Assembly: GCA_900088475.1 (NCBI GenBank)
Contig: FLMG01001458.1
Span: forward strand, 52,153 to 116,152
Length of the DNA: 64,000 nt
Origin: Hyphochytrium catenoides
Lineage: Eukaryota > Protista > Hyphochytriomycota
Direction of reading: 5' to 3'
Positions 9,101-54,107 of the stretch are shown here, piece after piece. Both the position numbers and the translations under genes were made by a program. The notes under the pieces were generated by a model. It saw nothing but the letters and a program-made list of their open reading frames with translations, searched no databases and was not told the origin of the DNA. Position 1 is the stretch's first letter, and each line of letters begins with the position of its first letter.

Positions 9101-12100
9101 TGCAGGCAATCTCTGCGGCTGATCTAGAAACAAGAATTGCCGTTTCTCAGCACCAGTCGCATTGGGGCAAGCTGATGGGGTTACTAGAGACCGCCAACGA
9201 TATGGAGAGAGTGTCCTCAACTCCTTCTCTGTCTCTTCCCTCTTCTTCTCCTTCCTCTGCCAGTGATACCAGTAAGAGGATCACTGAGAATGACAGTCAG
9301 ATGATCTTTTCTTCTAGTCTCATTCGATTAGGACTTCCAAGCCTTGTAGGTCCATATATTGCCGATATATCGAGGAAGGAAGTAAGTGTCAAGCAAAGCC
9401 TCTTAGAAAGGGCCTATGAAGCGGCCTGGAGGCTTCAGGATTGGAACTTTACGGAGACCAAGGCGGAGCATCTCCATCTCCCCCTACCTGAGAGAGAGAG
9501 ATTCCAGGAAAGTATATTCTTCCTCATGAAGATGCTGAAGGGAGGAAATGAGCCATCCTTTAGGGGAAGAATGGAGCGGCTGAAGCTCTCCCTCCTGCGC
9601 TCTTTGGATCAGCCAGGGTCGACTACTAGCCAAGATATGCAGGGTCTTTCCGACTGCCTTAATAAGCTGCATATATTGGGAGAGATAGCAGAGGCTTGGG
9701 ATGTCTGCCGGGGAGGGAAAGAGGAGGTTGGAGAAGGAAGCGTACGGAGTCTATATCGGCGTTGGAAAAGAAAAGAACTCCTCCTGTCAAGCAACTTTAC
9801 CCGTTCGGAGACTCTTCTCTCTTTACGTGGCACTCTTCTTTCCCTCGTGAGCGACGTGCTGGCCAGTCACGGAGTAGAAAGCGAGCGGCTGGCTGAGAGC
9901 ACCGTGGCCCTTGTAGATCAGTATCTTACGGGTTCTCTCCTTGCCAGGGACGCAAGCCAAATTCAATTATGTCTCCCACTACTGGCTAAGGCTTGGAGGG
10001 TGCTTGAAGGTTGTGATACCTTCGCTTCTTCTCTGTCTCGCGGGATACCTGGAAACTCCCTTCTTGCCTCTGTCCTTCGCTATCGCTGGGGTCTAGAGTA
10101 CATCCGCGTACTATGGGCCCAACAGGAGCCCGATGTCGCTATCAACCTGAGCAGAGAGATAACAAGCGACCTAGAGACCTTCCTGCGTCGAGTCGCCCCG
10201 ACAATTCTACCTTCTCCAGCCTCTGGGAAAGCAACGTCAGTTGCAACAAATCACGGGGTTCTGGGCGGAGGAGGAATGGCTTTTCTCCACGAGAGCAATC
10301 GAGTGGGCGGACTAGTGAGCATCTTCGCGACTCTTCTCTCTCTCTCTGGTTCTTGGGTGGCGAGCTCAAAGTCTGAAAACTCTCAGGATATTATAGATGC
10401 ATACTATAGAAAGGCTATTCAAGCCCTCCACAGGTAAGGTCTCTGCCTTCATTTTGTCCTTCTACTTCTGCCTTTACATTCACCCATTCTTCTTCATTCT
10501 TCACGTGTGAAGCCCTTACTCCTACCCTAACCTTGATTGCCTATCTCTGCATTGACTCTGCTTCCGTTCCTTACCTCTTCTTGCTCATGCTGCGGCATGG
10601 CTCCTCATCCCTATGTTGTTTCGTCATTTGATGGTCGACAGTGGATCCCAAGCGCGGCGCAGCTCCGTCACGAGAGAAGAGGAGGAAGAGGAAAGTGGCA
10701 AGGGAATTGACCTCGGAAGAGCACATCAACTCCTAGGGAACTATGTCTCCAATCTCTACTTTGGGGTCAAGCAGAGAGTACAATCCCCAGAATGGGCGGC
10801 CTGGAGCAACCTTCTAAGCTTTAGAGAGGAAGAGCTGAAGACCATTGAGAAGAAGAGGATGAAGGTACGTCCATCTTTTCTGCTAGCGCTCTCTCTGCTC
10901 ATTCTCCGCTGTAAACAATAGCTCTTTCTTTGACTCTTTCTCTTCTCTATATCCTTGTCTCGCGGTGTATGCTCTCCACACCCGTCTTTGCATTACTATC
11001 ACCTATTTCTCTTGGCCCACGCCCGTCTTTGGCTTACTTATTACCTACTCATGGCTAAAATGAACCAGACCAAGAATCAGTACCATAGAGCTTTGCAGAT
11101 CGAATGCGCGAGAGATAGAGAGGAAAGAGAGAGAGTAGAGGCCTCTCTCGCCGATCTGCTTCTGGAATCTCTCTCCGAATACTCCAAATGCCTTGCATTT
11201 TCTTCACAAGAGGGAGACTTTAGCGTAGTCTTCCGCTTCTGTTCGCTCTGGTTCTCTAATGCTGAGGACCGGAGGGTTAACGAAGTGATGAAGGGAGCGA
11301 TTGCATCGATTCCTTCTTATAAGTTTGTTCCTCTGGTTTACCAGATCTTCTCAAGGATAGAAGGTAGAGCTTCCTTTGCCTTCGTTACTAGCAGCATGTC
11401 ATCCTTACTACCAGCTTGGCTTGGTTTATCGTGGCCCCTAGCCATCTCCCTTACTTCGCGGATAATCTGGGTGGCTCCAGCTCATCATTTGCCCCCAGTC
11501 CTGTTGCCTTTCTCCCCTACCTTCTAACGTTTCCTTGTCCCGACCAAAGCCTACTTTACCTTGCTTGATCGTCGAAAATCCTGCCGACTAACACTCTTGC
11601 CTGCGTACCAGAGAGGACAACATCGTCAAGAAGTGACTTCCAGGATGTCCTTTCCAGTCTCATTATCAAGATCTGCAGCGAACATCCGCACCATTCACTC
11701 CTCCAACTTCTTGCCCTTTCTCGCGGGGATGAAGCTCAAAGTTCACTTGGCAGTCACATCTCTTCTTCTCCTCTCTCTCCTTCCCCTACCTCTTCGAAAG
11801 CAAAGGAGGCAAGAAGGCACTTAGAGCGACTTAAACGAAGCCCGTCTCTTCTGCCACTGGTTGAGTCACTAGAAGTGCTCAGCAGTGCATATCATATCCT
11901 AGCTTTCTTTGACACTTCCCCTTACCATAAGCAGAGAAAGTCCACAATCCCCTTCGAGGTGGTCAAAGTTCATGGCAGAGTCTCATTCCAACACTGTCTA
12001 AGAGAGCGGATGAAGCTGGGGGATACCGTAAGCTGATCGCAACCTATGCTCTTGATTCCCGTAGCTATATCTATGTGCTATATCTATTTGACTCAGCTCC

Positions 12101-22693: not shown

Positions 22694-25198
22694 ATGGGCG
22701 TCCCGGACCAGGCGGTTGAAACAACTGGCGAACCTGCAGCGCACTATGAAGCTCCACTTTCGCCCAAGATCCCTGACAACCTTGAGGCAGGAGGTGATCA
22801 GCGAACTGTCTCGGTTACGTTTATGAGCCATGCAACGGTTCTACTTAAGTGGGAGAACGTTGCCTACGACGTAGAAATAAAGAACTCGGTGACAAAAAAA
22901 ATGGAAAGCAAGACTATTCTGAAGCCGATGACGGCATACGCTCGTCCGGGAGAACTCCTTGTCATTATGGGCCCAAGGTAAAGTCCAATGGACAAAGTTT
23001 TAGGCGATGTGGAAGTTATCGCTAACATAATTGGCCCGTTTGCGTTTCGTGTCCGCAATCTGATCCTCTTCATGCAGTGGTGCGGGGAAGACGTCTCTTT
23101 TGAACATTATTTCAGGAAGGAATAAGTTTCATAAGGGTTCAGTTACCCTTAACGGACTGCCTTGGAACAAGAAGATGAGGAAACTATCCTCCTATGTACA
23201 GCAGGATGACATGTTCTTTGGAGAGCTCACGGTGCTTGAGCACCTCACTTTCCAAGCGGAGCTGAGGATGGACGAGTCTGTCTCGAAGGAGTACAAGGCC
23301 GCAGCAGTGAAACAGGTGATGGAGGAGCTAAATCTTACCAAGACGAAGGACTCCATGATTGGGACGCCAGGGAAAGTCCGTGGTATATCTGGAGGAGAAC
23401 GGAAGAGACTGGCTATTGCCAGTGAGATCCTCGTTGACCCTTCCCTGATGTTCGTTGATGAACCCACCTCAGGTTAGTCAGTCTCTCCTGTGCTTTATAA
23501 GCTGTCGTGCTCTATGCAGAGTGCTGACGCTTTCGTTCTTACTGTGTATACATAACGTGCGCTTCTGATGCTTGTGACACTTACCCGCATCCGATGTCTT
23601 CTGTTGTCCACAGGTCTGGATTCATTTATGGCTGAACAGGTTGTACAGCAGCTGTACCAATTAGCACAGGGAAGCAGAACCATTGTGGCAACCATCCACC
23701 AGCCCTCTTCAGGTAACAGTCCGTTCTGTCGGGTGTAGTTGACATACACTCACTTTCTCTTCCATTTTATAATATGCCTCTCTCTATTCTTCTCTGCCTT
23801 TCTGTCACAGATGTCTTCGCCCTGTTTGACCGGCTTCTGCTGGTTGCGGACGGGAGAATGGCTTACTTTGGAAAGGCTGCGGATGCTATCGCGTACTTTG
23901 GCAACATTGGCTATCCTTGCCCTTCGTACAGCAATCCTGCTGACTACTTTATGAAGCAGCTCTCTATCATCAGCACGGACTTAGACGAAAGCAAGAAAAG
24001 AGTGAAGCAGATTTGTGATGAATACGATGTCAATGCGGCCACAGCTGCGGAGGCCAAGGCCAACGCGGCGAACCCTATATCTGATGCAGGAGACATGGGA
24101 AAATTTTTGGAGGATCCGCAGACAGCTAAAACGTACAAGACGTCCTTCAAGAAGCAGATGATAGAGCTTACCAAGCGCTTTGCCGTTTGCACTATCAGAA
24201 ACCCCCTTTCCTTCCGGGCGAAGATAGGTCAAGCTCTCTTTTTGGGTGTCCTTGTGGGGTTAATTTACCTACAGGTCGACAACTCTCCTCAGGGAGTGCA
24301 AGACTTCAACGGTGCTCTATTCTTTATTGTCGTTAACCAGGCCTTCTCCAACACTATTCCTGTCGTTCAAAGCTTTCCAACGGTTCTCCCTCTCTTCCTG
24401 AGAGAGCACCAGGCGGGGATGTACTCGGTTGGAGCTTTCTTCACAGGGCTGACTACGTCTGATATACCCTTTCAAATACTCTGGTAAGTCTTCACGATGC
24501 TCTATGTCACTTGGCACCTGTCTTTGATCTTTATGTGTGAGAGGAAAGCCCTATGACTTAGTAGTTCCTGTCTTATCTCCGACTATCCTATGCAAGAACA
24601 CCTGCTTATTTTGCGCATGAGTGTCCCTGCTCTATGTAATCTTTAGTGCTCCATCCAACGAAAGTACTAATGGGACTTCGTCCATTCTAGGCCAGTGCTT
24701 TTTGGAACAGTGGCGTACTGGATGATCGGCTTCAGCGATAGCTTCACAAACTTCCTGATCTTCCTGGTTATCATAGTCCTCATTTCCAACACCGCTATCT
24801 CTCTGGCATATATGATCTCATGTGTCGCCCCCACAGTAGAGCTTGCGTTGGTTCTGACCCCATTGATCATCCTACCCTTTATGCTCTTTGGCGGGTTCTT
24901 CGTCAACGAGGGCAGCATCCCCGCGTACTTTTACTGGCTATCGTACATCTCTTTTATACGCTACGGTTTCCATGCTGCTGCGGTCAATCATTGGAAGGAT
25001 TTTGGACCCATCCCGTGCCCTCCAGGTTCCGAGGTGTGCTACAAGGATGGGTTGGCAGTGCTGAACCTCCTAAAAATTGACCCTGATGATCTGTGGCTAG
25101 ACTTGGTGGTGCTCATTATCATGATGGTGGGGTTCCGCATACTGGCCTACATATTCCTTCTCCTGAGGACAAGGAGGGCTGAAAAGACTGTAGCTTAG
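22694..25198 (+). CDS. ABCG (white-like) half transporter, 5 exons
   Basis: NBD-TMD order. Walker A GPSGAGKTS is split by intron 22978-23077. Also YVQQDD, signature [13 protein letters not shown], Walker [14 protein letters not shown]-loop TIHQPS, NPADY, and TMD motifs [10 protein letters not shown] and [24 protein letters not shown]. Confidence 0.95.
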
Positions 25199-34526: not shown

Positions 34527-35370
34527 AAGGAAGAGAGAGATAACAAGGAAGAGAGATGGTGCAAGTTTTTGTGCTTTAGATAGAGTATTGTGTGTGAGAG
34601 AGACAGAGAGAGGGAGAGAGAGAGAAGTGTCCATGTTTCTCTCGCTGCCATCCCTCAAGCTGAACATCCGCCTCTGTATAAATCTTTTAACTGAGAGAAG
34701 CGCTTGACGTAGTGGGGAAACGTCTCAAGCTCTTTACGGCTTTCTCCCTCTCGTTCTTTCTCTGTAGGCCGACCTCTTCATCTCTCTCTCTCTCTCTCTT
34801 CAAAGCGCTCACTTTCATGTCACTTTTGTTCGTTCGGCGTAGATAAGACGAGTGAGATTCTTAGAAGGAGATGACCTGGACCGCGTCCGCCTTAATCCAC
34901 AAGTGCTCCATAACCTCAAGGTGGAGGCGCTTCCTCTTGCTCCGACACTCCGCNNNNNNNNNNNNNNNNNNNNNNNNNNNNNNNNNNNNNAAGGACGTGA
35001 CGGTTTAAAGGCTGACAAAAAAGCGCCATCCCCAGAGGAACTGGATGCTTACTCAAGGAGCCGATGGGATATGGTCCTGCACTACATGGTGAGTTGAGAG
35101 AGGAAATCCCAGAGAGGAAGAGGCATGGACGGAAACACTTCGGGATGAAAAGGCGCCAAGGAGAAGTGTTAGATAGTGTCAGATTCTTATGGTTTGCTTT
35201 CTTCTCGGCCGCTGTGACTTCCTGGAAACTCGTTGTCTCTTTGTTTGCCTCTCTCCCACGCAACCACCTGTTGTCATGCTTGCAGCCGCACATCTGGCCC
35301 CTTCCCATACTCTCCTCTTCTCTCTTCCCTCTTTCCTCTGTCTCTCTCTTTATTTATTCATCTATCTCTG

Positions 35371-35402
<32 letters not shown>

Positions 35403-35460
35403 TTATCTATCCTTCTATCTCTGTCTCTCTCTCTGTCTCTCTCTCTCTCACACACACACA
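31466..35460. repeat. Cluster of (CT)n/(GA)n microsatellites in introns and intergenic DNA
   Basis: Tracts near 31470-31510, 31940-32050, 32945-33190, 33540-33612, 34475-34524, 34780-34800 and 35340-35460. Confidence 0.95.
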
Positions 35461-38028
35461 ACCGCTTTACCCCGTTCTCACTTTCTCTCACTCCATCTAT
35501 CCGTCCTCAATCCCTCTCTCTCCAGGTGGGCTCTGAAGAAGTGGAAGACCCTCCGCCAGAGGTTGTGGGGCTGCTGTTAAAGACTGGACTCATGAGGGAG
35601 AACGAAGATAGGAGATCCCTGCATATTACGGATGTGGGCTATGAATTCATGCTTAAGGATGTGCACGTTCAGGTAGAAAACTTGTTCCCATTTCTGTGTG
35701 CAGGATCTACCTCTGGCCTATAAACCTGCAACTCTTGCTTTCTCAGACTATCCAGCTGAATGCTAATGTGAGCTCTCCACTGCGATCTCTCTCTCGCTTC
35801 TCTCGTTTTTCGTCTTTCTCTCTCTTGTCCTCGCAGATATGGACCTTTATCGTGGAGTATATGAAGACATGCGAGCAAAAGGCGAAGCCCATCCCACGAG
35901 ATGAGGTTTTGAAGTTTCTTTTTCAGCTCAGGTCAGCCATAAGCCTCTCCAGTTCCAGTCTCTCTCTCGCCCTTTCTCGTTTGCGATGGTGGTCTCCGTT
36001 CACGTCCGGGCTCCATTTTAATCTCTGCACACCCTTTGCCATCAAGAGCTAGCTCTTGACTAAGACAACATGACTGCAGCTACTGCAGAATGTATGAGTA
36101 TTATGCTGTCAACAGCCTCTCTCCGGACCAGCAGGTTCTTTTAGGCGATCTTAGTAATTTTGGCTTGCTCTTCATCCGGAAGAAGTCATCCCGGCGGTAT
36201 GCGCACGGCAGAGCTGACGACTCTTATTATCGCCGCATGCTTTGTCCTCCAACACCGAGTAGTCCTCTCTTCCTCTCTCTATTTAGCGTTGAAAGCACTG
36301 AGCTCTTTTCTTTCCTTCAGGACCTTATTCCGATCTCTGATTACCCTTTGTCTCCTACGGCGCCAGTCCTTTGATACATTCGTCTGCCTCCTTCCCAATC
36401 GCATTCTTGATCTTTTTTCTCATGTCGCGGACGCTTGGTCTGTCTGCAGGTTCTATACAACCCGTCTATCCGTAAATCTTATCTTTGGCAGCAACCACGG
36501 AGGGCAGATTCAGATGGGCGGAACTGCGAGAAGCCTTGTAAGAAAAAACTACCTGCCATACAGCTGTCGCTCAACGCCATTCTATGCTAACCCGCATGGT
36601 CTTCGTGACCTCCTATCATGCTGCTGCTGAAGGCCACTTCACTCCCTCTCTCGATGTCGGAGGCAGCAGCGCCTCTACAGCTTATAGTTGAGACGAACTT
36701 CAAAGTGTACGCATATACAACCTCTTCCCTGCATGTCTCCATGCTTGGACTCTTTGTAGACATCGTGGTACGTTACTTGGCGAGGTGAAGGGGCAAATCA
36801 CACCTAAGAAAGACAGGAGAAAGGGCAACCTGTGTAGTCAGCCTGCTTTCGAGGGAGAGGGAGAGATCTGACAGAGCGAGAGAGTTCCCTCTAGCGACTA
36901 GAGTAGTATTGAGAGATCGAATGTGAAAGGCTTGGCAAGGGTGGATATGCTAAGAGTCTCTACGTAGATGCGATTGCCTAACATCATTGTGGGGTACATC
37001 ACGAGAGAGAGCCTTCGCTACGCTCTGGCACACGGGATCTCTGCTGCTCAGGTACAGAAAAGCTTTTAGCTAAGTGTCAATCAGTCAATGTGGTCTTTTA
37101 TCTATTCAACTCTGTGTTCCTTAACTTTCTTGACCCATCGTCCCTCTAGCCTCTGTCTCTCTTCTTGCTCTACTCTTCGTCTCTCTCTTGCTTCTCCGTA
37201 ATATATTCCTCTTTCCCTTCTCCTGTTAAAGTTCCTTTCTTCTTCTCCTCAGATGCGCCTCTCTGCAGCCATGCATACATGACACATGTGTCTCTCTCTC
37301 AGATTGCTAGCTTCTTGGTAAAGCACAGCCATCCTAAGATGCGACAAAGAACAGATATTATCCCGACCAACATCCTTGATCAGATCTACCTCTGGGAGGT
37401 ACGTGCACTCGTGTGGTCAGGTTCATCTCCTGCTGACTAAAGACGGTTTGGCCTGCATATCTTTTCCGGCTCTGTTGCACTTTCCCCTTTTCCCCCCTCT
37501 GTCTTGTTTCTCTCTGTGTCTCTCTGTCTCTGTGTCTCTCTCTCTTGTCCTATCTCTATGTCTATCTCTCTGACATTACTCTCCACGTTCCGCTCTGTCT
37601 CCCTTCCCGTCTCTCTATCTTCTTGGTCTTGGCATGCGTCGGCTGCTCTTGCATTTGCAGAAGGAGCGCAAGCGCGTTCAATATTACCCTGCTGTTCTGA
37701 TCACAAACTTCAACTCAGGAGAGGAGTTTCGAGAGGTGCGGCGCCGTAGCGAATATTCCCTCGCAATGTGTCTGCTTTCAACCTCGGTCGTGTCTGATCT
37801 TCACTATCTGCACCTAAGTTGTTAGTTCCACGTCCCTTCTATCGCCTTCTTAGCGATTTAATCCTTTGATGCGAAGGTTGATCGGTCATACTTCTCCAGG
37901 CTGTTAACTATGCGCGGGATCTGTCGGCACTACTCTGGCAAGACGATGAAACGATGCGAATGGCTATAAACAAGGAATCTGCGGACAGCATGAAGGCTTT
38001 CTTCCGCACCTTAACAGTGAGAAGATAG
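33631..38028 (+). CDS. GTF2H4: TFIIH subunit p52/Tfb2, multi-exon
   Basis: MEVLDAFHFIEGLPDNSLHRLYADPWTCQAVFQSLSALAKQ; LDAYSRSRWDMVLHYMVGS; ITDVGYEFMLKDVHVQIW; LIVETNFKVYAYTTSSLH; RLPNIIVGYITRESLRYALAHGISAAQIASFL..HPKM..IPTNILDQIYLWEKERKR. Stop TAG 38026-38028. Confidence 0.93.
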
Positions 38029-41796: not shown

Positions 41797-44700
41797 ATGA
41801 GTTTCCTTATGGACTTCGACTCGATATTTGCAACAGAAAGTCCCTCGGGCCATGGGAACTCTAGGCGAGGCTTCTCTGGAGCCAGAGGCCGAGGCGGACG
41901 GTCTGGTGGGAGGAGGAGAGAGTTTCCTGCTGCAGGTTGGGCTCCTTCCACCCCGTATACTCTTCAAACTCCAAGCTGGTTCAATAAGATCCTAGATTCT
42001 GGGGAGACCAAGCCTTGGAATGTTGTCAGTGCAAAGCGGTTTGTTACAGTCGTCTTGGACTCGAAGCAGCCTTTGCTAATGCTTAGCCGGCTTACAACTA
42101 GCAACTTTGGCATGGCAGTGGTTCGAGATTGTCTTTCAGTTGAACCAGGCTCCTGCAAGTTCATGAATGAGGTGATTGTTCCCTTCCTGTCCTTCTTCGT
42201 CAAGGACAAAGGAATATCTGCTGGCTCTCACAGAGCCTTTCTCCTTTGCCTCCTGCGGACCGTGCGTGACGCCCCGTTCGACTTGTGGGACTCCGTTGTC
42301 CGAGCTGCAATTGCGAAGCAGCTCAACGACCCTCTAGTTATCGCATGGGTCATGCTGAGGCTGATCGAGGCACAGGATGATGATGAACAGGATGAGTCTA
42401 AGAGTGAGCTGGCACGGCTACATGCCCGTCTGTTGGCGTCTTCTCTGAAAGAAGGTTTGGACTCTATGACGACCAAACTTGAAGCAGAAGACTCGCCGCC
42501 CGTTATCGGCATTGATGACTTTTGTCGTGAACTAGAGAAGTTGCTGACTTTCTCTGAAGGTGGATGTGGCGGGCACGAAGAAGAAAAGAGCAGTAAAGGC
42601 CCCGGTGGTCGCCATTCCAATGATAAGCTGAACTTCCGTGAGATCCAGATCTATCCGACGGCAGGGGAGCTCTTATGCTCTGAGGATCCGTTTCTGCCTC
42701 TCACCGAAGACGTTCTAAGGGAGAAGTCTGATGTGTCTTACATGGACTGGCTCTTTCGCCTGCTAAGAGAGGATATCGTTGCATCTGTGCGCGATGAGAT
42801 CAAGGTGCTTCTAACGCCTAAGGACAAATTAAGTGCGGCTGAGTGGAAGCTTTATCGGCGCTTGGAAGCTCGCTCTGTGGATGTTTCGTCATTTGCAGGC
42901 ATCCAGTTTGCCCGCTCATCTTCTCCTTCTCTCCCGCCCTTTGGACTAAAAATGACCTTTGTCGTCCCCCAACAGCTGCAGCGAGAACTGAAGGAGGCTG
43001 CGAGGCGGGCGAGTAAGCTAAGAGGGACTGGGACACAGAAAGGAACCAAAGCGGAGGATTTGGAAGCAGCAGAGAGGTACAAAAGGAGACTATTCAGGGA
43101 TGCCATCAGAAGATACTGGGAGGCTAATCCCTTATTGCTCCAAAGGGAGAGCCTACTCGCCTTCATCTCCGCAGAGGGGCAGTTTAAGTGGCTGGGCGTC
43201 GTGTCACAGCGAACCGACAATGATCTCCAGAATGATGACAAGCCCTCCATATGCGTCTCTTTCCCTGATTCGGATGCCATCAATGACTTCACATCCCTGC
43301 TTTATGTGAAACAGACTGGCCTAAAGGCTTATCAACTCTCCGCTTCTTATTTCGCCTTCGCCCCAGTCCTGGAACGTCTGCAGTCCATTCACTGGCTGCC
43401 ATTCAAGGAGATCTTCTTGGATTGGCCTGAGTTTCCAGCACTAAACTCCGACGAGCGACCAAGGTATCAGACGGCAGCCTTTGATAGGCTCATACAATCT
43501 TTTCAAGCTTCGCAAGATGTGTCACAGTTGCTGAAGCTATCTAAGTCTGTCGTGTTAGATGAGCAACAGAAGCTGGCTGTCACTAAGGCCTTACAGATGC
43601 CAGTGGCTCTCATCCAAGGACCACCAGGGACAGGAAAGTCCTTCTGCGGTGCCCTTATCGCCAAGATTGTCCACGATTTCTCCGATGAGACGATTTTATG
43701 CATCTGCTATACCAACCACGCCCTCGACCAGTTCCTAGAGGATCTCTTAGATGCTGGGATGCCGGGTTCGGAGTTTCTACGTCTTGGCGGCGGCGAAAAG
43801 GTTACCGATCGCATCTTACCGCACACGATGGGTGAGCTGCAGCGAAGGGAGAGAGAGAGAAAGAAAGATAGAGATTTCAATAGAAGCTATGCCCAGTTGA
43901 AGACAAGGATTCAGGTATGCGAGGATGAATTGAGAGCCTTGGTAGAAGGGCGTACAGCTTCTGAGCTCCAGAACTCCACTAGATACTCTCATTTCTCCAA
44001 CTATATTGATGGTGATTGGCTGGAGAGCTTCCAAATGCCGATGGACGCCCTTGATATTGTTGGCAAGAAGGGAAAGCAGCTCCGAGAGGACTATCTCTGG
44101 CGCCGATGGGTAGCAGGCTCCGACCGTGGGCTAGTCTCATCAGTAGACGACCATGAAGACTTTGATGATACTAATGGAGTATGGGCAATGTCTCTGCAAG
44201 AGAGAGAGGCAAAGATCACGGCTTGGCGGAGAGAAATGATGGCCGACAAAGTGTACAAGCCATTCACAAGGAAGGTACGCGAGCTTGAGCTCTGGAAGGG
44301 AATGCTGGATGATCTACTATCACAAGGTACCAGTGAGCTATTAAAGAGGAAGCGAATCATTGGATGTACCACTACTGGCGCTGCCAAGTACCGTCGCGAG
44401 CTGCAAGCTGTGTCTGCAGGGGTCATTATAATGGAAGAGGCGGGAGAGATCTTGGAAGCACATGTCTTGTCCAGCTTGACGCCTAGCTGCAAGCACCTTA
44501 TCATGATTGGAGACCATCAGCAGCTGCGGCCTAAGGTCAACTCGTACTCACTTCAGGTGGAAAGTGGCGGGCCTTATGGGTTGAATCGTTCCCTCTTTGA
44601 GAGGCTGGCAATCGCAGATTATCCGCACGTGACACTGCAGTGGCAGCACAGGATGAGGCCTGAGATCTCTGAGCTGATACGGAAGCTGATGTACCCAGAG

Positions 44701-47700
44701 CTCAAGGACGCGAGTGGCACCAAAGGCCGTTCAGACCTCAAAGGCGCTTCCTCAAACATAATCTTCGTTGAACACAACGCCCCAGAGGGTAACTATCATG
44801 GCTTGGACGGGTCCGGTTGTAGCGGTCAACATGCAAACGACGCTCTTTCTAAGGTGAACTACGAGGAGGTACGCTGGGTGGCGAAGATAGCGCTCCATCT
44901 TCAGCGCCAAGGGTATGACGGAGACAAGATGGTGGTTTTAACTCCATACCTAGCTCAGCTGCATGCCATTCGGGATGAACTGTCTAAGGTCTTTGACATT
45001 GTAGTTGGTGAGCTCGATGCTGCCGATCTAGCTTACCAGGGTCTCAGCCAAGCAGCACCACCTCCCTCTAGACGAGCACTGCTCAGTTCGTTCCTGTCCC
45101 AGCAGAGAGGCAGAGGCCAATGGAAGATTCGTGTCGCCACAGTGGACAATTTTCAGGGCGAAGAGGCAGATATCGTGATTGCTTCCTTGGTCAGGAGCAA
45201 TGAGGAAGGTAAAGTGGGCTTCATGGGGCAGATCCAACGAGTCAACGTACTTCTGTCTCGTGCTCGTGACGCACTGATATTGGTGGGCAACAGGACTACC
45301 TTTGAGAACGCGAGGTCACCGCCAGGGGCTCGAAAGATGTGGCAATCGATCTTCGGAATGCTTGAACGTAAGCAGGCAGTTTACGGGGGCTTCCCCATTC
45401 AATGTCAAAGACATGGCACTCGCATTCTTGTCACTGCCCCCGACGACTTCTCAGAGCTATCCCCAGCAGGGGGTTGTGAGCTACTTTGCGGACTGCCTTT
45501 GGACTGCGGTCGCCATCAGTGTGACAAGGCATGTCACGCCAATGTAGACCATAGTCGGGTGAGGTGCCACCAGCCCGTCAAGTGGCAGTGTACTGTAGGT
45601 CATGACGTCTATTTGCCTTGTGATAGTCCTGCTGGTGCAGACCCGAATAAGAGCTGTCAGCAGTGTTTGGCCTTGCAAGAAGCCACGCAGAAGAAGCTTG
45701 ACAGGGAAGCAAAGCAAGCAGCACAGCAGCAGGAAGCCAAGAGGTTGATAAAGGCCAAACTAGAAGAACTCGAGCAGGAGAAGAAGAAGCTGCTGAATAT
45801 TCAACAGGAAGAGGCCACAGCTGTTCAGCTGGCTCACCTCGAACACCAACTTGAGCTCACTAAGAAGAAGCTTGAGCTGCGCACTTTAAGAAGCCAAGAC
45901 AACCGCGATGACCATGCGAGAGACATGAAGAGGAGGCTACAGGCCGAGATCAAGCAGCTCGAGATGTCTTTTAACAGCGGCAGTAGCGGTGGCGTCGCCC
46001 AAGAGCCTGCCACCCTCAATGACGCGCCGACACAAGCGCCATTAAATAGTGATGAAATAACTGAGCCGGAGTCTGGCGAGCGGAAAAGCCAACACACAGA
46101 GCTGCAGGAGGCTAGTCTAGTTGAAGAAGAGGACCTACATCATCTGGTGTCCCTGTCCTTCGAGCAGCAGCTGGATGCTCTACTGCTACAGCGTAATCCA
46201 GCCTTTCCGGTGCCGTGCCTACCAGGCGGAGCCACGTGGAAAGATGAACTCCAGGCAGGAGCGACGACGGCGTCCTTGCCAAGTCTCCTGATGCCTGGTA
46301 TCAACTTCACAGATGAGGAGGAGGGAGGCTGGCTTAAAGCCTACCAGTACCTGGATAAGCTCCGGATAGAGAAGTCTGTGGATGCGTCTTTGCAGTCTGA
46401 AGATATCCAGCTAACAAAGCAACTACTCTGCCTCCTTTGTCGCTCTCAATTGGCGGACTTCTCAGTTAAAAGCGATGTCGAAGCCCTACTTGGCCCTCAA
46501 CCCTGGAACCATGGCGTTAAGGGCAACCTTGTGCTCTACACTTTCTCCATGGCGATGCTGGTCCGAAGCCTGTACAACGAGAAGAAAAAGGAGGCTTACG
46601 TCCTTATTTTGGCTTTCCTAGGTCTGGCGAGACACGTCAGTGATGTCCCAAAACGTTGGTTGAGGCTGGCAGAAGACCTGAAGGAGCGCCTTGCGCAGGA
46701 GATCAAGGAAGCAGCGCAAAGAGCTCGCCTCGGTCTCTCTTCCTCTTCTCGAGAAGAGCCTCTTGAAGACCGCATTGCTCGGCAATGGAACGAGGAGAAA
46801 GGCCGGAGCGGTGCAATGAACGACGGTATGGAAGAGATGCTGAAGCTTTCAGGCTTGGGCTCGCTAAAGAAGCAGTTCCTAGACATCTACAACGCCATTA
46901 GCCATGCAAAGGAGCAAGGTAGAACGCTGAAGAAGCGCCTTAACATCTGTCTTTGCGGCAATCCTGGAACAGGCAAGACCACCGTGGCCCGCTGCTATGG
47001 CACTTTCCTCTTCCAGCTGGGCACGCTCTCGGGCAACTGCTTTGTGGAAACCACAGGCGCTAGACTTGTCCATGAGGGAGTTCAAGGGCTTGAGAAACTT
47101 CTTAAGCAGATTGAGGGCGACGGCGGCGGGCTGCTCTTTGTCGATGAGGCTTACCAGTTGAGCCCTCAGTCCGAGCCAAACGGGAGGCGTGTCCTTGATT
47201 ACCTGCTGGCGGAGATTGAGAACAAGATTGGCAGTCTAGCTGTGGCCTTTGCTGGATATCAGAAGAAGATAGAAAAGCTCCTGGAGCACAATGAGGGTCT
47301 TCCCAGCCGTTTTCCTTATCTCTTTGTCATTGAAGACTACTCGGACGAGCAGCTGCGTCAAATTTTTATCTCTTCTGTCGCTGCGGCCTTTGAAGAGACC
47401 AAGGCCGTTACCTTTGAGGGAGGCCCGAAGGGAGAGGCAGTGCAAATTCTAATGAGAAGGGTGGGTAGAGGGAGGGGCAGACCTGGTTTTGGAAATGCAC
47501 GAGCCGTAAAGATTGAGGTGGAGAGGATGTTTGAGCGCCAGGCGACACGTATCAAGGCGGAGAAAGACGCAGGACACAGCCCAGATGACTTCTATTTCTC
47601 TCGTGAGGACCTCCTAGGACCAGATCCCGTCACTTCCCTAGACCGATGCCCTGCGTGGGCGGAGCTTAAGCGTATGGTCGGCCTGAAGAGGGTGAAGGAG

Positions 47701-50013
47701 GAGATAGACAACTTTGTTGACCTTGTGAAGACTAATGTTGAGTTAGAGAAAAGGTTGAAGCCGCTCCGGACCATCACGCTAAGCCGCTTATTTCTTGGCA
47801 GTCCTGGAACGGGCAAGACTACGGTTGCTAAGCTCTATGGGGAGATCCTTTGCGCGTTAGGTTTCCTAAGCAATGGAGAGGTTGTCGTCAAGAAACCCAG
47901 CGATTTTATTGGCTCCGTCTTAGGTGAGTCGGAGAAGAACACGCTTGGCATCCTCAACGCCTGCAGAGGGACAGTGCTCGTCATCGACGAAGCTTACGGC
48001 CTCTTTGCTGCCTCGTCATCGTCATCTTCCGGAGGAGCTTCTTACGGACAAGATCCTTTCCGTGCTGCAGTCATTGATACTTTGGTGGCAGAGGTACAGA
48101 ATGTCCCTGGAGATGACCAATGCGTGCTGCTTCTTGGCTACAAGGAGGAGATGGAGAGGATGATGGCGGCGAGCAACCCTGGTCTTCAGCGGCGCTTCTC
48201 TTTGGAGAGTGCTTTCCACTTTGAGGATTTCTCCATTGATGAGCTAGTGACTATCCTTAACCGCAAGTCTCAAAAGCGAGGGGTTCAGCTGTCTTTCGAT
48301 GCCCAACGATGTGCCGCAGAAGTCCTGGGTAAGCGGCGAAGGCTAAAAAACTTTGGCAATGGTGGCGAGGTGGAAAACCTACTGACAACTGCCATCATGA
48401 ATGCCCAAACACGGCAGCGGGCCACGCCGCCGGAGCAGCGGGATGACTTTCTCTTACCCTCTGACTTTGATCCTAAGTGGAGGGCGCTGGAAGAGGATGG
48501 TGGCGGCCGTGGGCAGTGCCTAGAAGACTACTTTGCCGATCTATTGCCTTGCTCGTCGCTTATGGAGCAGCTAAAAGGTTATCAGCTGTCTATGGACTTA
48601 GCGCGCCAGCGGGGACGTGACCCTCTGACCATCATCCCTATGAACTTCTGCTTTGTTGGCCCTCCCGGGACGGGAAAGACCACTGTGGCAAGAAGAATGG
48701 GAAGGTTCTTCTGCGACCTCGGTGTTTTGGGCTCTGAAGAGGTGGTGGAGACTTCTGGGGCATCTTTCATAGGCCAGTATGTGGGACATACAGGGCCTAG
48801 AACTATTGCAACTCTAGAAAAGGCACTGGGGCGGGTGCTTTTCATTGATGAGGCCTATCAACTGGACACAACCCGAGGCACGGGAAGCTTTGCAAAGGAG
48901 GCTGTCGACGAGCTTGTCAACCAGCTGACGAAGCCACAATTTCACCGTCGCCTCGTGGTTATACTAGCTGGCTATGAAGCCGACATAGATTCTCTTCTTC
49001 GGTCGAACGAAGGCCTTCGGAGTCGATTCTCTGAGAGAGTGGTCTTCCAGAGCTTCTCTGGCTCTCAGAGTGTTCAGCTTTTTATGGCTGTACTCGGAAA
49101 GGAAGGGGTTGAGATTGAAGACGTAGATGATGAGGTGTTGGGCTCACTCTTTATGGAGCTGTCAGAAACATCTGGCTGGGGCAATGGGAGAGACATCACA
49201 ACGCTGGCTCAGAGAGCGATAAGGGTTCATGGTCAGGAGCTAGCCATGCATGGCCAACTGGCCCAGGTTAGTGCAGGCTCAGCTTTACGGATCTCAATGA
49301 GGACTATTGTCCAATGCTTGACGGAGGAAAGAGACAAGAGGAGAGAGGATGACAGAAAGCAGCAAGCACTTGAGGTTGACAGCAGCCTGCAGCAGAAGAG
49401 GAGCTTTCTGTCATCGCAGGCTGCTCCTCAGGTAGCGGACAAGTTAGGCAAAGGAATGAACCCGGCAACCACGAAGAAGCAGAACCAGACGCCAACAGCC
49501 AACTCCAAGGCAGAGGAAGCGGAGGGCGAAGGTGAATGTGGAGAGACCCAGCCAGAACCGGAGGAGCCAGGAGAAGAAGAAGGCAGCAGCGGAAGTTGCA
49601 GCGTGAGAAGAGATGCTGGAGTATCTGATGACGTGTGGGAAGAGCTGCAAAGAACCATTGCAGCTGAGGACCGTAGAGAGTCAGAGAGAAAGGAGTTGGA
49701 AGATCGGGCAAGGTTTGCCGAAGAGGAAGCGAACCGATTGGCAGACCTTGCAATGAGAAGACAGCTCCAAGAAGAGGAAGACAGAGTGAGGAGGGAGGCA
49801 GAAGAAGAGGCGAGGAAGGCCCGGGAGCAGGCTGAGCAGCTACGACTTGAAGCAGAAAGAAAGCGAGAAGAGCAACGTAAGGAAGAGGAGGTCCAGAGAA
49901 AGTTGCAAAAGCTTGGAGTCTGCTGCATGGGCTATCGCTGGCTGCGCTGCGGGAGCGGCTACCGGTGTGCAGGGGGTTCTCACTTTGTCAGCGAGCAAGA
50001 ACTAGGAAAGTAG
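41797..50013 (+). CDS. ZNFX1-like SF1 helicase + NFX1-like zinc finger + three CbbX/SpoVK-type AAA+ ATPase domains, single-exon CDS, 2738 aa
   Basis: ZNFX1 signatures RHSND..FREIQIYPT..EL and FRLLREDI. Helicase motifs QGPPGTGKS, CYTNHALDQFLE, GCTTTGAA, MEEAGE, IGDHQQLRP, SLFERL, QHRMRPEI, TVDNFQGEE, RVNVLLSRAR. Cys/His finger near 45475-45670. Walker A at 46957, 47797 and 48658, each followed by DEAY and NxGLxxRF. Confidence 0.95.
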   Translation: MSFLMDFDSIFATESPSGHGNSRRGFSGARGRGGRSGGRRREFPAAGWAPSTPYTLQTPSWFNKILDSGETKPWNVVSAKRFVTVVLDSKQPLLMLSRLTTSNFGMAVVRDCLSVEPGSCKFMNEVIVPFLSFFVKDKGISAGSHRAFLLCLLRTVRDAPFDLWDSVVRAAIAKQLNDPLVIAWVMLRLIEAQDDDEQDESKSELARLHARLLASSLKEGLDSMTTKLEAEDSPPVIGIDDFCRELEKLLTFSEGGCGGHEEEKSSKGPGGRHSNDKLNFREIQIYPTAGELLCSEDPFLPLTEDVLREKSDVSYMDWLFRLLREDIVASVRDEIKVLLTPKDKLSAAEWKLYRRLEARSVDVSSFAGIQFARSSSPSLPPFGLKMTFVVPQQLQRELKEAARRASKLRGTGTQKGTKAEDLEAAERYKRRLFRDAIRRYWEANPLLLQRESLLAFISAEGQFKWLGVVSQRTDNDLQNDDKPSICVSFPDSDAINDFTSLLYVKQTGLKAYQLSASYFAFAPVLERLQSIHWLPFKEIFLDWPEFPALNSDERPRYQTAAFDRLIQSFQASQDVSQLLKLSKSVVLDEQQKLAVTKALQMPVALIQGPPGTGKSFCGALIAKIVHDFSDETILCICYTNHALDQFLEDLLDAGMPGSEFLRLGGGEKVTDRILPHTMGELQRRERERKKDRDFNRSYAQLKTRIQVCEDELRALVEGRTASELQNSTRYSHFSNYIDGDWLESFQMPMDALDIVGKKGKQLREDYLWRRWVAGSDRGLVSSVDDHEDFDDTNGVWAMSLQEREAKITAWRREMMADKVYKPFTRKVRELELWKGMLDDLLSQGTSELLKRKRIIGCTTTGAAKYRRELQAVSAGVIIMEEAGEILEAHVLSSLTPSCKHLIMIGDHQQLRPKVNSYSLQVESGGPYGLNRSLFERLAIADYPHVTLQWQHRMRPEISELIRKLMYPELKDASGTKGRSDLKGASSNIIFVEHNAPEGNYHGLDGSGCSGQHANDALSKVNYEEVRWVAKIALHLQRQGYDGDKMVVLTPYLAQLHAIRDELSKVFDIVVGELDAADLAYQGLSQAAPPPSRRALLSSFLSQQRGRGQWKIRVATVDNFQGEEADIVIASLVRSNEEGKVGFMGQIQRVNVLLSRARDALILVGNRTTFENARSPPGARKMWQSIFGMLERKQAVYGGFPIQCQRHGTRILVTAPDDFSELSPAGGCELLCGLPLDCGRHQCDKACHANVDHSRVRCHQPVKWQCTVGHDVYLPCDSPAGADPNKSCQQCLALQEATQKKLDREAKQAAQQQEAKRLIKAKLEELEQEKKKLLNIQQEEATAVQLAHLEHQLELTKKKLELRTLRSQDNRDDHARDMKRRLQAEIKQLEMSFNSGSSGGVAQEPATLNDAPTQAPLNSDEITEPESGERKSQHTELQEASLVEEEDLHHLVSLSFEQQLDALLLQRNPAFPVPCLPGGATWKDELQAGATTASLPSLLMPGINFTDEEEGGWLKAYQYLDKLRIEKSVDASLQSEDIQLTKQLLCLLCRSQLADFSVKSDVEALLGPQPWNHGVKGNLVLYTFSMAMLVRSLYNEKKKEAYVLILAFLGLARHVSDVPKRWLRLAEDLKERLAQEIKEAAQRARLGLSSSSREEPLEDRIARQWNEEKGRSGAMNDGMEEMLKLSGLGSLKKQFLDIYNAISHAKEQGRTLKKRLNICLCGNPGTGKTTVARCYGTFLFQLGTLSGNCFVETTGARLVHEGVQGLEKLLKQIEGDGGGLLFVDEAYQLSPQSEPNGRRVLDYLLAEIENKIGSLAVAFAGYQKKIEKLLEHNEGLPSRFPYLFVIEDYSDEQLRQIFISSVAAAFEETKAVTFEGGPKGEAVQILMRRVGRGRGRPGFGNARAVKIEVERMFERQATRIKAEKDAGHSPDDFYFSREDLLGPDPVTSLDRCPAWAELKRMVGLKRVKEEIDNFVDLVKTNVELEKRLKPLRTITLSRLFLGSPGTGKTTVAKLYGEILCALGFLSNGEVVVKKPSDFIGSVLGESEKNTLGILNACRGTVLVIDEAYGLFAASSSSSSGGASYGQDPFRAAVIDTLVAEVQNVPGDDQCVLLLGYKEEMERMMAASNPGLQRRFSLESAFHFEDFSIDELVTILNRKSQKRGVQLSFDAQRCAAEVLGKRRRLKNFGNGGEVENLLTTAIMNAQTRQRATPPEQRDDFLLPSDFDPKWRALEEDGGGRGQCLEDYFADLLPCSSLMEQLKGYQLSMDLARQRGRDPLTIIPMNFCFVGPPGTGKTTVARRMGRFFCDLGVLGSEEVVETSGASFIGQYVGHTGPRTIATLEKALGRVLFIDEAYQLDTTRGTGSFAKEAVDELVNQLTKPQFHRRLVVILAGYEADIDSLLRSNEGLRSRFSERVVFQSFSGSQSVQLFMAVLGKEGVEIEDVDDEVLGSLFMELSETSGWGNGRDITTLAQRAIRVHGQELAMHGQLAQVSAGSALRISMRTIVQCLTEERDKRREDDRKQQALEVDSSLQQKRSFLSSQAAPQVADKLGKGMNPATTKKQNQTPTANSKAEEAEGEGECGETQPEPEEPGEEEGSSGSCSVRRDAGVSDDVWEELQRTIAAEDRRESERKELEDRARFAEEEANRLADLAMRRQLQEEEDRVRREAEEEARKAREQAEQLRLEAERKREEQRKEEEVQRKLQKLGVCCMGYRWLRCGSGYRCAGGSHFVSEQELGK

Positions 50014-53129: not shown

Positions 53130-54107
53130 ATGGTTCAGTCAAGCGTGTTTGAGTTTGACTTCGATCCATGCATTAGCGATTTTGAGCTCCTTGATCGGAG
53201 GGAGGATGCCGAATCTTTCTCGACAGATGTTCCGGAGTTTCCAGGCCCAGAGGATATCGTCTTCTCTGAGGATGACTCAGACCAGTTCTTGTCGCTGGGA
53301 ACTCCTGAGGACACGATGGGAGACATGCTTAGTCTATTGAACCACAAAGAACCAGGCTTTGATGTCTTCAACATGGACTACGAGTTCAATTCTCCAGTAG
53401 ACAATGAAGAGCTCGATAGCATCGCTCTTTCTCTTGGCGCTGTTGCAGAATCCTCCTCGTCAACCCCTCGTGACACAAACCGTTTCAAGAAGAAGGAAGC
53501 TCCTGCACAGTCACCAACCAGAAAGCGAACCCGAGAAGGTTCGTTTTCAGAANNNNNNNNNNNNNNNNNNNNNNNNNNNNNNNNNNNNNNNNNNNNNNNN
53601 NNNNNNNNNNNNNNNNNNNNNNNNNNNNNNNNNNNNNNNNNNNNNNNNNNNNNNNNNNNNNNNAAGGATACTTCCGTCTTATTACCCTCTGATAGGAAGA
53701 TTGGGTCATATACGGTTGAACAGCGAAGAGAGCGCATTCAGCGGTACCTAGAGAAGCGCACTCGCCGCGTGTGGAGAAAAACCATCAAGTATGACTGCCG
53801 CCAGACTCTGGCAGCAGCACGACCAAGGATCAAGGGAAGGTTCGTGAAGCGATCAGACGTGGAAGCAGAGGCTGGGACGGCATCGGAGCTGGTTATGAAT
53901 GTCCCAGCAGCTTGTCAACCTCTGTCTATGGGCCCCGTCTCGCTTGTGAGGACCGAAACTGATGCATCTAAAAAGCTGTCAGCGTCTGTTAGACCGACGC
54001 TGAGCAAGAAGTTACCTTTATCCAGTACGTTTATCAGCAAGCCTTCGCCAGGACGCCCAGTAAATGGCGGCAGGAAGGTGGCGGCTGTTGTCAAGTGCAC
54101 GTCATGA
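53130..54107 (+). CDS. CCT-domain (CONSTANS/CO-like/TOC1 motif) protein
   Basis: IGSYTVEQRRERIQRYLEKRTRRVWRKTIKYDCRQTLAAARPRIKGRFVK after an acidic N-terminal region. The N gap at 53553-53663 lies inside the ORF and could hide an intron. Confidence 0.88.
   Translation: MVQSSVFEFDFDPCISDFELLDRREDAESFSTDVPEFPGPEDIVFSEDDSDQFLSLGTPEDTMGDMLSLLNHKEPGFDVFNMDYEFNSPVDNEELDSIALSLGAVAESSSSTPRDTNRFKKKEAPAQSPTRKRTREGSFSEXXXXXXXXXXXXXXXXXXXXXXXXXXXXXXXXXXXXXKDTSVLLPSDRKIGSYTVEQRRERIQRYLEKRTRRVWRKTIKYDCRQTLAAARPRIKGRFVKRSDVEAEAGTASELVMNVPAACQPLSMGPVSLVRTETDASKKLSASVRPTLSKKLPLSSTFISKPSPGRPVNGGRKVAAVVKCTS

Follow-up and report, generated by a model that had tools for sequence, protein, structure and literature searches.

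In a 64,000-nucleotide stretch of the Hyphochytrium catenoides genome (contig FLMG01001458.1 of assembly GCA_900088475.1, positions 52,153 to 116,152 of the forward strand; hereafter the window), we found a single gene that encodes a ZNFX1-type superfamily 1 (SF1) helicase fused to three AAA+ modules of the SpoVK-EccA clade and to a terminal Cys/Cys/His mini-domain. The gene occupies 41797..50013 on the + strand of the window and is a new non-fungal member of a eukaryotic fusion family that has been recorded but is uncharacterised. We are highly confident in the identity of its parts. The architecture itself is not new: sequence databases contain it, and a single line of a 2024 paper already mentions an SF1 RNA helicase domain fused to the SpoVK-type AAA+ clade in eukaryotes (PMC11513918). 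The protein may couple RNA recognition to AAA+-driven remodelling, and the evidence for and against this possibility is weighed below.

The gene was found to be one open reading frame (ORF) with an ATG start, 2738 codons without an internal stop, and a stop codon. At approximately 50% GC, a stop-free run of this length would be expected by chance with a probability of about (61/64)^2738, or about e^-131. To place the helicase-AAA junction on independent ground, contigs assembled separately from public sequencing runs were used: a contig from run X1 bridged the junction at 45394-48262, and contigs from run X2 covered 43600-45983 and 46025-49500. Over the ORF, the X1 and X2 contigs were free of reported joints and loose ends. 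Since the junction is spanned in assemblies from independent runs, the fusion is not a mis-join. A preliminary description of this DNA, made from its letters without database searches, had proposed one chain of 2738 amino acids (aa) and had raised a mis-join as a concern; the continuous frame and the joint-free X1 contig uphold the former and settle the latter. Between-sample single-nucleotide polymorphisms within the ORF comprised 16 synonymous and 9 non-synonymous changes, compared to 23% synonymous expected at random (p = 1.6e-5). Within the species, purifying selection acts on both the helicase half and the AAA half of the frame.

Two variants were noted in the contigs of a second sample, S2 (runs X2 and X3). 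The first, A>GG at 46349 (codon 1518), would cause a frameshift with a stop at codon 1521 and thereby remove all three AAA modules. The second is an in-frame 3-base deletion at 44152 (codon 786), in the helicase insertion, where it falls inside the acidic stretch VDDHEDFDD. These variants may reflect strain or allele polymorphism, or assembly error.

We then compared the helicase half with all solved structures, first by sequence. The best match was human ZNFX1 (9q9z; 4.5e-83), followed by UPF1/Nam7 (approximately 7e-31 to 6e-30) and then by Aquarius, IGHMBP2, SETX, DNA2, and SEN1. The same protein was ranked first by structure. An AlphaFold2 model of aa 60-1255 had 9q9z as its best Foldseek match (E 2.5e-42) and as its best VIA-align match, with a Z of 33 at 3.1 A over 676 residues and 34% identity (model 210-1196 against ZNFX1 330-1316). 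The corresponding VIA-align values for UPF1 were a Z of 29.6, at most 582 residues, and 23-26% identity. Helicase motifs Ia, II, III, IV, V, and VI were all present and invariant across the family, and the residue-level alignment to ZNFX1 did not stop at motif VI but ran on into the first zinc fingers of the NFX1 type. The two Walker B glutamates (E821 and E822 as family alignment columns) were also invariant; an EEAA Walker B is the deviant feature singled out for ZNFX1 (bioRxiv 10.1101/2025.10.14.682297). The kinship of the helicase is ZNFX1-specific and not generic to SF1, because the match to 9q9z far exceeds that to UPF1, the alignment continues into the fingers, the Walker B motif is shared, and the structure matches agree.

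The first 560 residues resembled ESM-Atlas clusters carrying the Pfam model PF25396 'ZNFX1' (score 0.95; 201 of 256 features), which is a lead and not proof. It was noted that aa 61-252, the segment compared with the armadillo-type dimerisation domain of ZNFX1, are helical and share this Atlas score of 0.95, while the solved core 9q9z begins only at residue 330. A scan of the N-terminus against a local copy of Pfam (E <= 10) returned noise only. The helical 1C-type insertion spans about 190 aa here compared to about 290 aa in ZNFX1. The acidic VDDHEDFDD stretch sits within this insertion, and the 1C domain of ZNFX1 itself carries an acidic RNA-groove plug helix.

The helicase core was also found to match profiles of bacterial defence systems. 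Window positions 43474-45792 matched the Mokosh anti-phage helicase MkoA (PADLOC profile; 2.2e-70), and the core matched the NCBIfam model 'PLuB system helicase-like protein' (8e-37). At the level of profiles, bacterial defence systems thus contain close relatives among their Upf1-like RNA helicases.

The C-terminal half carries the three AAA+ modules, hereafter AAA1, AAA2, and AAA3. Pfam recognised three PF00004 AAA stretches and matched AAA_lid_6 to two stretches; its AAA_5 and AAA_7 matches were fragments covering the P-loop only, with 0 significant stretches. When each module was scanned alone against NCBIfam, only the SpoVK, CbbX, and EccA models were returned (TIGR02881, TIGR02880, and TIGR03922; E 1e-26 to 7e-48). 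The scores of 91-164 bits lay far under the equivalog cutoffs of 423-467, and because of this none of the modules is an orthologue of CbbX, SpoVK, or EccA. The closest solved proteins were EccA1 (9lur; 5e-37) and CbbX (3syk; 2e-28), both for AAA3, which is the closest of the three modules to these two proteins.

The SpoVK-EccA clade is marked by a GY in sensor-1, by an Asn that precedes the arginine finger, and by retention of the sensor-2 Arg (PMC11513918). In an alignment of 54 family sequences, the Walker A motif, the Walker B DEAY, the GY, the Asn, and the Arg six residues after it (N+6) were invariant in all three modules. The sensor-1 GY of the H. catenoides protein occurs as AGY at 1819-21 in AAA1, LGY at 2113-15 in AAA2, and AGY at 2391-93 in AAA3. 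At N+4, an Arg was found only in AAA3 of the H. catenoides protein, with Pro in AAA1 and Gln in AAA2; the Asn/Arg signature of the clade is full in AAA3 and partial in AAA1 and AAA2. The sensor-2 Arg is kept in two of the three modules (GNARAV in AAA1 and GNGRDI in AAA3), with AAA2 carrying GNGGEV and lacking the Arg throughout the family. An aromatic pore loop was likewise found only in AAA3 and was missing from AAA1 and AAA2, again family-wide. Because AAA2 lacks the sensor-2 Arg and only AAA3 has the aromatic pore loop, the three modules are not equivalent. From these motifs, we infer that AAA3 is probably the working, substrate-engaging module and that AAA1 and AAA2 are ATP-dependent assembly or regulatory modules.

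The chain ends in the motif G-V-C-x2-G-[FY]-x-W-x5-G-Y-R-C-x-G-G-x-H-x-V-x4-L-G. The two Cys, one Trp, and one Gly of this tail are invariant, and the His is more than 90% conserved. A few members have a Cys in place of the His at the same position, and because of these swaps the His is suggested to be a metal ligand and not a catalytic base. In the AlphaFold2 model, the tail forms three short strands with a predicted local distance difference test (pLDDT) value of about 80. It has no Pfam model (aa 2501-2738 scanned at E <= 10, with noise only) and no solved relative. A 44-position profile of the tail, searched against 1.84 billion representatives, matched 1,546 proteins at E <= 0.001, of which 807 remained at E <= 1e-10. 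Many of these matches were C-terminal fragments of the helicase-3xAAA+ fusion family, and others were unrelated fungal proteins with 4 to 16 copies of the unit in tandem. These included 16 copies in P0121, 4 in the Pleurotus protein P0126, and 4 after a region resembling tetratricopeptide repeats (TPR-like) in P0128; the array carriers P0121, P0122, P0126, and P0128 come from Pleurotus, Cudoniella, and a lichen fungus. By these matches, the tail is an independent and mobile mini-domain of about 35 aa that was previously unnamed.

The tail was also considered as an RZ finger, a speculative identity that the sequence does not support, as the tail has only two conserved Cys and one conserved His, at other spacing. 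The RZ finger of ZNFX1 has a Cys/His/Cys/Cys zinc site and a catalytic Cys/His pair. When the tail profile was searched against PDB at E <= 10, no RNF213 or ZNFX1 chain was returned, and there was one chance match (E 7.7).

We sought to characterize the family through a search with aa 560-2500 in a collection of 5.8 billion proteins. Of the 8,000 candidates scored, at least 1,685 proteins passed E <= 0.001. The 120 best matches listed were almost all proteins of about 2,300 aa from Ascomycota and Basidiomycota, with database names such as 'P-loop containing nucleoside triphosphate hydrolase protein', 'NFX1-type zinc finger-containing protein 1', and 'CbxX/CfxQ family protein'. Like the H. catenoides protein, the relatives contain four correspondingly spaced Walker A sites and end in the same motif. 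By BLAST, the H. catenoides protein aligned to the family over aa ~62-1370 and ~1650-2737, and to the Sphagnum protein over aa 79-2732. Identity to this best relative was only 39-44%, and the H. catenoides protein itself was absent among the 120 best listed. Identity to fungal members such as those of Botrytis, Aspergillus, and Armillaria was 33-37% in the N-terminal half and 41-44% in the C-terminal half. The preliminary description had mentioned similar fusions as automated annotations in fungi and oomycetes, and for fungi this was accurate: the family is present there under such names and is unstudied.

Full-length Sphagnum orthologues (P0002 and its cluster) were found in S. troendelagicum, S. 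jensenii, S. balticum, and S. magellanicum. The Sphagnum gene is real, with near-identical copies on contigs of 18-25 Mb in the four species; no other land plant was found among the 120 best matches. Outside fungi, the family was encountered in one stramenopile, in Sphagnum, and in a few proteins from Logan contigs, and it is apparently patchy. In the mushrooms, P0001 of Candolleomyces aberdarensis (4,701 aa) contains two complete tandem copies of the architecture with eight Walker A sites. Several Agaricomycetes carry at least two copies, sometimes on the same contig (P0018/P0023, P0025/P0112, and P0063/P0107), which represents local duplication.

A maximum-likelihood tree, built with a quick search and rooted at its midpoint, placed H. 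catenoides, Sphagnum, and two Logan-contig proteins in one clade (100% support by the Shimodaira-Hasegawa-like approximate likelihood ratio test, SH-aLRT), sister to a Dikarya clade (100%). Within the Dikarya clade, the sampled Basidiomycota and two Logan-contig proteins formed one group and the orders mostly clustered, which argues for largely vertical inheritance in Dikarya. Mean identity between Ascomycota and Basidiomycota was 47% and 52% in the two halves of the protein. Recent transfer from fungi was considered and rejected, as a long and well-supported branch separates the H. catenoides clade from the sampled Dikarya.

Our examination of the literature on ZNFX1, AAA+ proteins, RNF213, Hrr1/SAD-3, mycoviruses, and PLuB returned no functional, virus-response, or evolutionary study of the fusion. 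In the recent ZNFX1 papers examined, the fusion is apparently not described; a term search of one of them returned no fungi, and its sole 'AAA' was the ATPase core of RNF213.

Several known systems share parts of this architecture. Similar to ZNFX1, ZNFX-1, Hrr1, and SAD-3, the H. catenoides protein has a putative ZNFX1-type N-region, a Upf1-like SF1 core, and a large helical insertion in RecA1, and it shares with ZNFX1 the deviant EEA-type Walker B and the NFX1-type fingers placed directly after RecA2. However, its finger stalk is shorter, neither a Miz-like domain nor an RZ finger was detected, and in their place it has the three AAA+ modules, a pair of coiled coils, and a terminal mini-domain of another kind. 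ZNFX1 is an RNA-activated antiviral helicase with ubiquitin ligase activity in its C-terminal Miz-like and RZ domains (PMC13710534). The AAA+ triplet and the tail occupy the position of this Miz/RZ effector. Compared to the SpoVK-EccA-like clade (PMC11513918), the modules have the same GY sensor-1, Asn before the arginine-finger region, AAA_lid_6, and, in AAA3, a CbbX-like pore loop, but there are three modules per chain here and one in the characterised bacterial members. The fungal members of about 2,300 aa have an identical domain order from the N-domain to the terminal motif; the H. catenoides protein differs from them by its RGG N-tail and by about 230 extra residues between the fingers and AAA1.

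Two further comparisons were looser. RNF213 contains a six-module AAA ring, a RING domain, and an RZ finger, and similar to the protein described here it is a giant protein in which ATPase modules are coupled to a C-terminal Cys/His element. Here, however, there are three classical SpoVK/EccA-clade modules, and neither RING nor RZ was detected by Pfam or the tail profile. The preliminary description had drawn an analogy to RNF213; it holds for tandem AAA+ modules in a giant chain and fails for the RING/RZ elements and the six-module ring. Mokosh is alike in the match of its MkoA profile to the helicase core (2.2e-70), and it works with a separate effector protein, a PLD-type nuclease. It is prokaryotic. 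No nuclease is present in the H. catenoides protein, and the N-domain, AAA modules, and tail of the latter were without matches to Mokosh components. RNF213 and ZNFX1 are both described as ATP-regulated immune enzymes in the ZNFX1 literature.

The features of the protein are collected in Table 1. The parts named in the preliminary description were all recovered: the RGG-rich N-tail, the helical domain (all-helical in AlphaFold2), the complete ZNFX1/Upf1-type SF1 helicase (with the Walker A at 43618 and not at about 43615), the short NFX1-like Cys/His finger, which aligns to the first ZNFX1 fingers, and a coiled coil after it. The same is true for the three AAA+ modules with intact Walker A and B motifs and arginine fingers, invariant in the 54 family members, for the charged C-terminal coiled coil, which is modelled as two long helices, and for the terminal Cys/His motif, which is family-wide. 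For the zinc-finger row, it should be noted that 9q9z chain positions run about 87 ahead of the numbering in the ZNFX1 paper.

Table 1. Features of the H. catenoides fusion protein, with residues in the chain and positions in the window.
Feature	Residues (aa)	Position	Strand	Basis or remark
RGG/RG-rich disordered N-tail	18-42	41848..41922	+	Upstream of the start of alignment to relatives (aa ~62-79)
All-helical N-domain, putative ZNFX1-type N-region	61-252	41977..42552	+	AlphaFold2 helices (model pLDDT 83.6)
Family-invariant GGRH-x-ND motif	270-276	42604..42624	+	Structural match to ZNFX1 begins here (VIA model 210 = ZNFX1 330)
Beta-barrel/stalk before RecA1, 1B-like	~300-586	42694..43554	+	AlphaFold2 strands; within the range aligned to 9q9z
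SF1 Upf1-like helicase core	587-1166	43555..45294	+	Pfam AAA_11 aa 587-916, AAA_12 aa 929-1166
Helicase Walker A GPPGTGKS		43618-43641	+	Sequence motif
Helical 1C-type insertion	664-852	43786-44352	+	Between motifs Ia and II
Deviant Walker B MEEAGE	879-884	44431-44448	+	Aligned to ZNFX1 EEAA
Short NFX1-type Cys/His zinc-finger stalk	1203-1291	45403..45669	+	Aligns to 9q9z chain positions 1358-1425; Cys/His family-invariant
First coiled-coil-like charged helical stretch	1292-1440	45670..46116	+	Read from sequence alone
Low-complexity linker and lineage-specific helical region	1441-1649	46117..46743	+	Not alignable to fungal members
AAA1	1650-1929	46744..47583	+	Walker A 1721, DE 1783-84, GY 1820-21, N1832..R1838, sensor-2 R1902
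AAA2	1930-2214	47584..48438	+	Walker A 2001, DE 2064-65, GY 2114-15, N2127..RR2132-33, no sensor-2 Arg
AAA3	2215-2500	48439..49296	+	Walker A 2288, DE 2351-52, GY 2392-93, N2404..R2408/R2410, sensor-2 R2465
AAA3 pore loop GQYVGHTG	2326-2333		+	Aligned to CbbX GQYIGHT
Disordered acidic stretch	2539-2610	49411..49626	+	pLDDT <50; ends in RD-x-GVSD-x-VW motif
Second coiled coil, two long charged helices	2611-2706	49627..49914	+	AlphaFold2 helices 962-1006 and 1012-1057 of the C-half model
Terminal Cys/Cys/His mini-domain	2707-2738	49915..50010	+	Conserved in 113 of 120 relatives

The linker between the helicase half and AAA1 is variable. The spacing from the helicase to AAA1 is about 230 aa longer than in fungal members, and a homology search with aa 1480-1720 found no relatives. 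Pfam on aa 1176-1689 (E <= 10) returned noise only, with no Miz-like domain, and an Atlas search with the helicase-AAA stretch returned generic SF1 helicase clusters only (best score 0.80). Further downstream, a near-invariant family motif, RD-x-GVSD-x-VW-x2-LQ (49585-49626, aa ~2597-2610), was noted directly before the C-terminal coiled coil, corresponding to near-invariant columns R956 to L968 of the family alignment of the C-terminal half.

The neighbouring ORF fragments in the window (8995-10437, 23774-24487, 35064-35723, and 53130-54107) belong to ordinary eukaryotic genes, identified as a fragment with a PIKK FAT domain, an ABC-2 transporter, Tfb2, and a CCT-motif protein. Most of the neighbouring genes are in pieces, presumably because of introns, and the 8.2-kb fusion gene is an uninterrupted single ORF.

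From the architecture, a coupling between RNA binding and AAA+ remodelling can reasonably be inferred. In the mechanism that we propose, the binding of single-stranded RNA would release and activate the helicase, as in ZNFX1, and the activated helicase would recruit an oligomeric AAA+ ring to the RNA-protein particle or switch it on there. The module with the sole canonical aromatic pore loop, AAA3, would then thread or remodel a specific protein partner; the ATP bound and hydrolysed by AAA1 and AAA2 would serve assembly or regulation. The setting is most likely cytoplasmic RNA surveillance or small-RNA silencing, including the control of transposon or viral RNA; the known relatives Hrr1, SAD-3, ZNFX-1, and ZNFX1 act there. 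We therefore favor, tentatively and with slightly less than even confidence, an RNA-gated AAA+ remodeller built on a ZNFX1 sensor half and working in RNA surveillance or small-RNA silencing.

Several points weigh against this proposal. A translocating pore loop is present in just one module, and the AAA part may therefore be a switch or a scaffold instead of an unfoldase. A ring could also take more than one geometry, either two chains with three modules each side by side or six chains in three stacked tiers. In addition, the search of sequencing runs found the gene in DNA runs only and in no RNA run, and no experiment on any member of the fusion family was found in the literature.

An intriguing question is whether the protein is instead a dedicated innate-immune sensor-effector, in which RNA of viruses or transposons would be detected by the helicase and an antiviral or abortive response carried out by the AAA+ ring. 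The preliminary description had suggested a one-gene innate immunity or RNA-silencing system and had proposed that patchy distribution, expansions, and fast evolution would support it. Part of this expectation stood, as the family is apparently patchy outside fungi (a stramenopile, Sphagnum, and a few Logan-contig proteins), and several Agaricomycetes carry at least two copies, with two in tandem in one annotated protein. ZNFX1 is itself an antiviral RNA-activated enzyme, the helicase core matches MkoA at 2.2e-70, the S2 sample has a variant that would truncate the chain at codon 1521, and arrays of the tail domain are also found downstream of a TPR-like region. Fast evolution, however, was not supported. 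Conservation is moderate, at 47-52% between the two Dikarya phyla and 39-44% for the protist protein against moss or fungal proteins over more than 2,000 aa; the tree mostly follows taxonomy in Dikarya, with largely vertical descent, and purifying selection acts within the species. The neighbours are of a housekeeping type, no paper was found that ties the family to a virus response, and the MkoA match possibly reflects just a shared Upf1-like ancestry. The evidence for an arms race is thus mixed and leans away from a fast-evolving gene, and we regard a dedicated immune role as unlikely.

The steady conservation and the vertical inheritance in Dikarya would suit a housekeeping chaperone of ribonucleoprotein (RNP) assembly or RNA processing, guided by its helicase to one cellular RNP, for example in mRNA decay or in ribosome or small nuclear RNP biogenesis and having no role in conflict. 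After ZNFX1, the nearest helicase folds are UPF1, IGHMBP2, SEN1/SETX, and Aquarius, which are housekeeping RNA enzymes. The SpoVK-type clade consists of chaperones with narrow, dedicated clients, and a role in RNA processing was predicted for its eukaryotic helicase-fused members (PMC11513918). However, the best relative in the collection of 5.8 billion proteins is a moss protein at 39-43%, where closer stramenopile orthologues would be expected, although this is absence of evidence only. The variable copy number in Agaricomycetes and the possible truncated allele in the second sample also fit poorly with a housekeeping gene. We consider this alternative to be improbable to the same degree as the immune one.

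A more specific version of the sensor-effector idea would make the protein an 'effector-swapped' ZNFX1, that is, an RNA-activated immune or silencing machine found from fungi to mosses and stramenopiles. In it, a three-module AAA+ unfoldase and a metal-binding mini-domain would replace the Miz/RZ part, and the mini-domain would act as a docking or catalytic module handing substrate to the ring. We view this version as doubtful, and rather more so than either alternative above. Finally, an artefactual joining of an adjacent helicase gene and AAA+ gene, to which the variable linker at aa ~1370-1650 without homologues and the frameshifting variant of one sample within that linker might point, is extremely improbable given the continuous ORF, the X1 contig that spans 45394-48262 without joints, and the identical fusion order in at least 1,685 proteins of fungal, moss, and Logan-contig origin.

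The family is of wider relevance, as ZNFX1 was recently shown to be an RNA-activated helicase driving its own ubiquitin ligase in antiviral defence. With the same sensor half and a different ATP-driven output, the family represents a natural experiment on how an RNA sensor can be wired to effectors, and it has gained interest since E3 ligase activity was assigned to the effector half of ZNFX1. The terminal mini-domain provides a separate small lead, as a conserved, mobile, and unnamed module. The family is also large, encompassing both Dikarya phyla, including plant and human pathogens, as well as peat mosses and at least one stramenopile. Determining the function in one tractable fungus would assign a role to well over a thousand genes.

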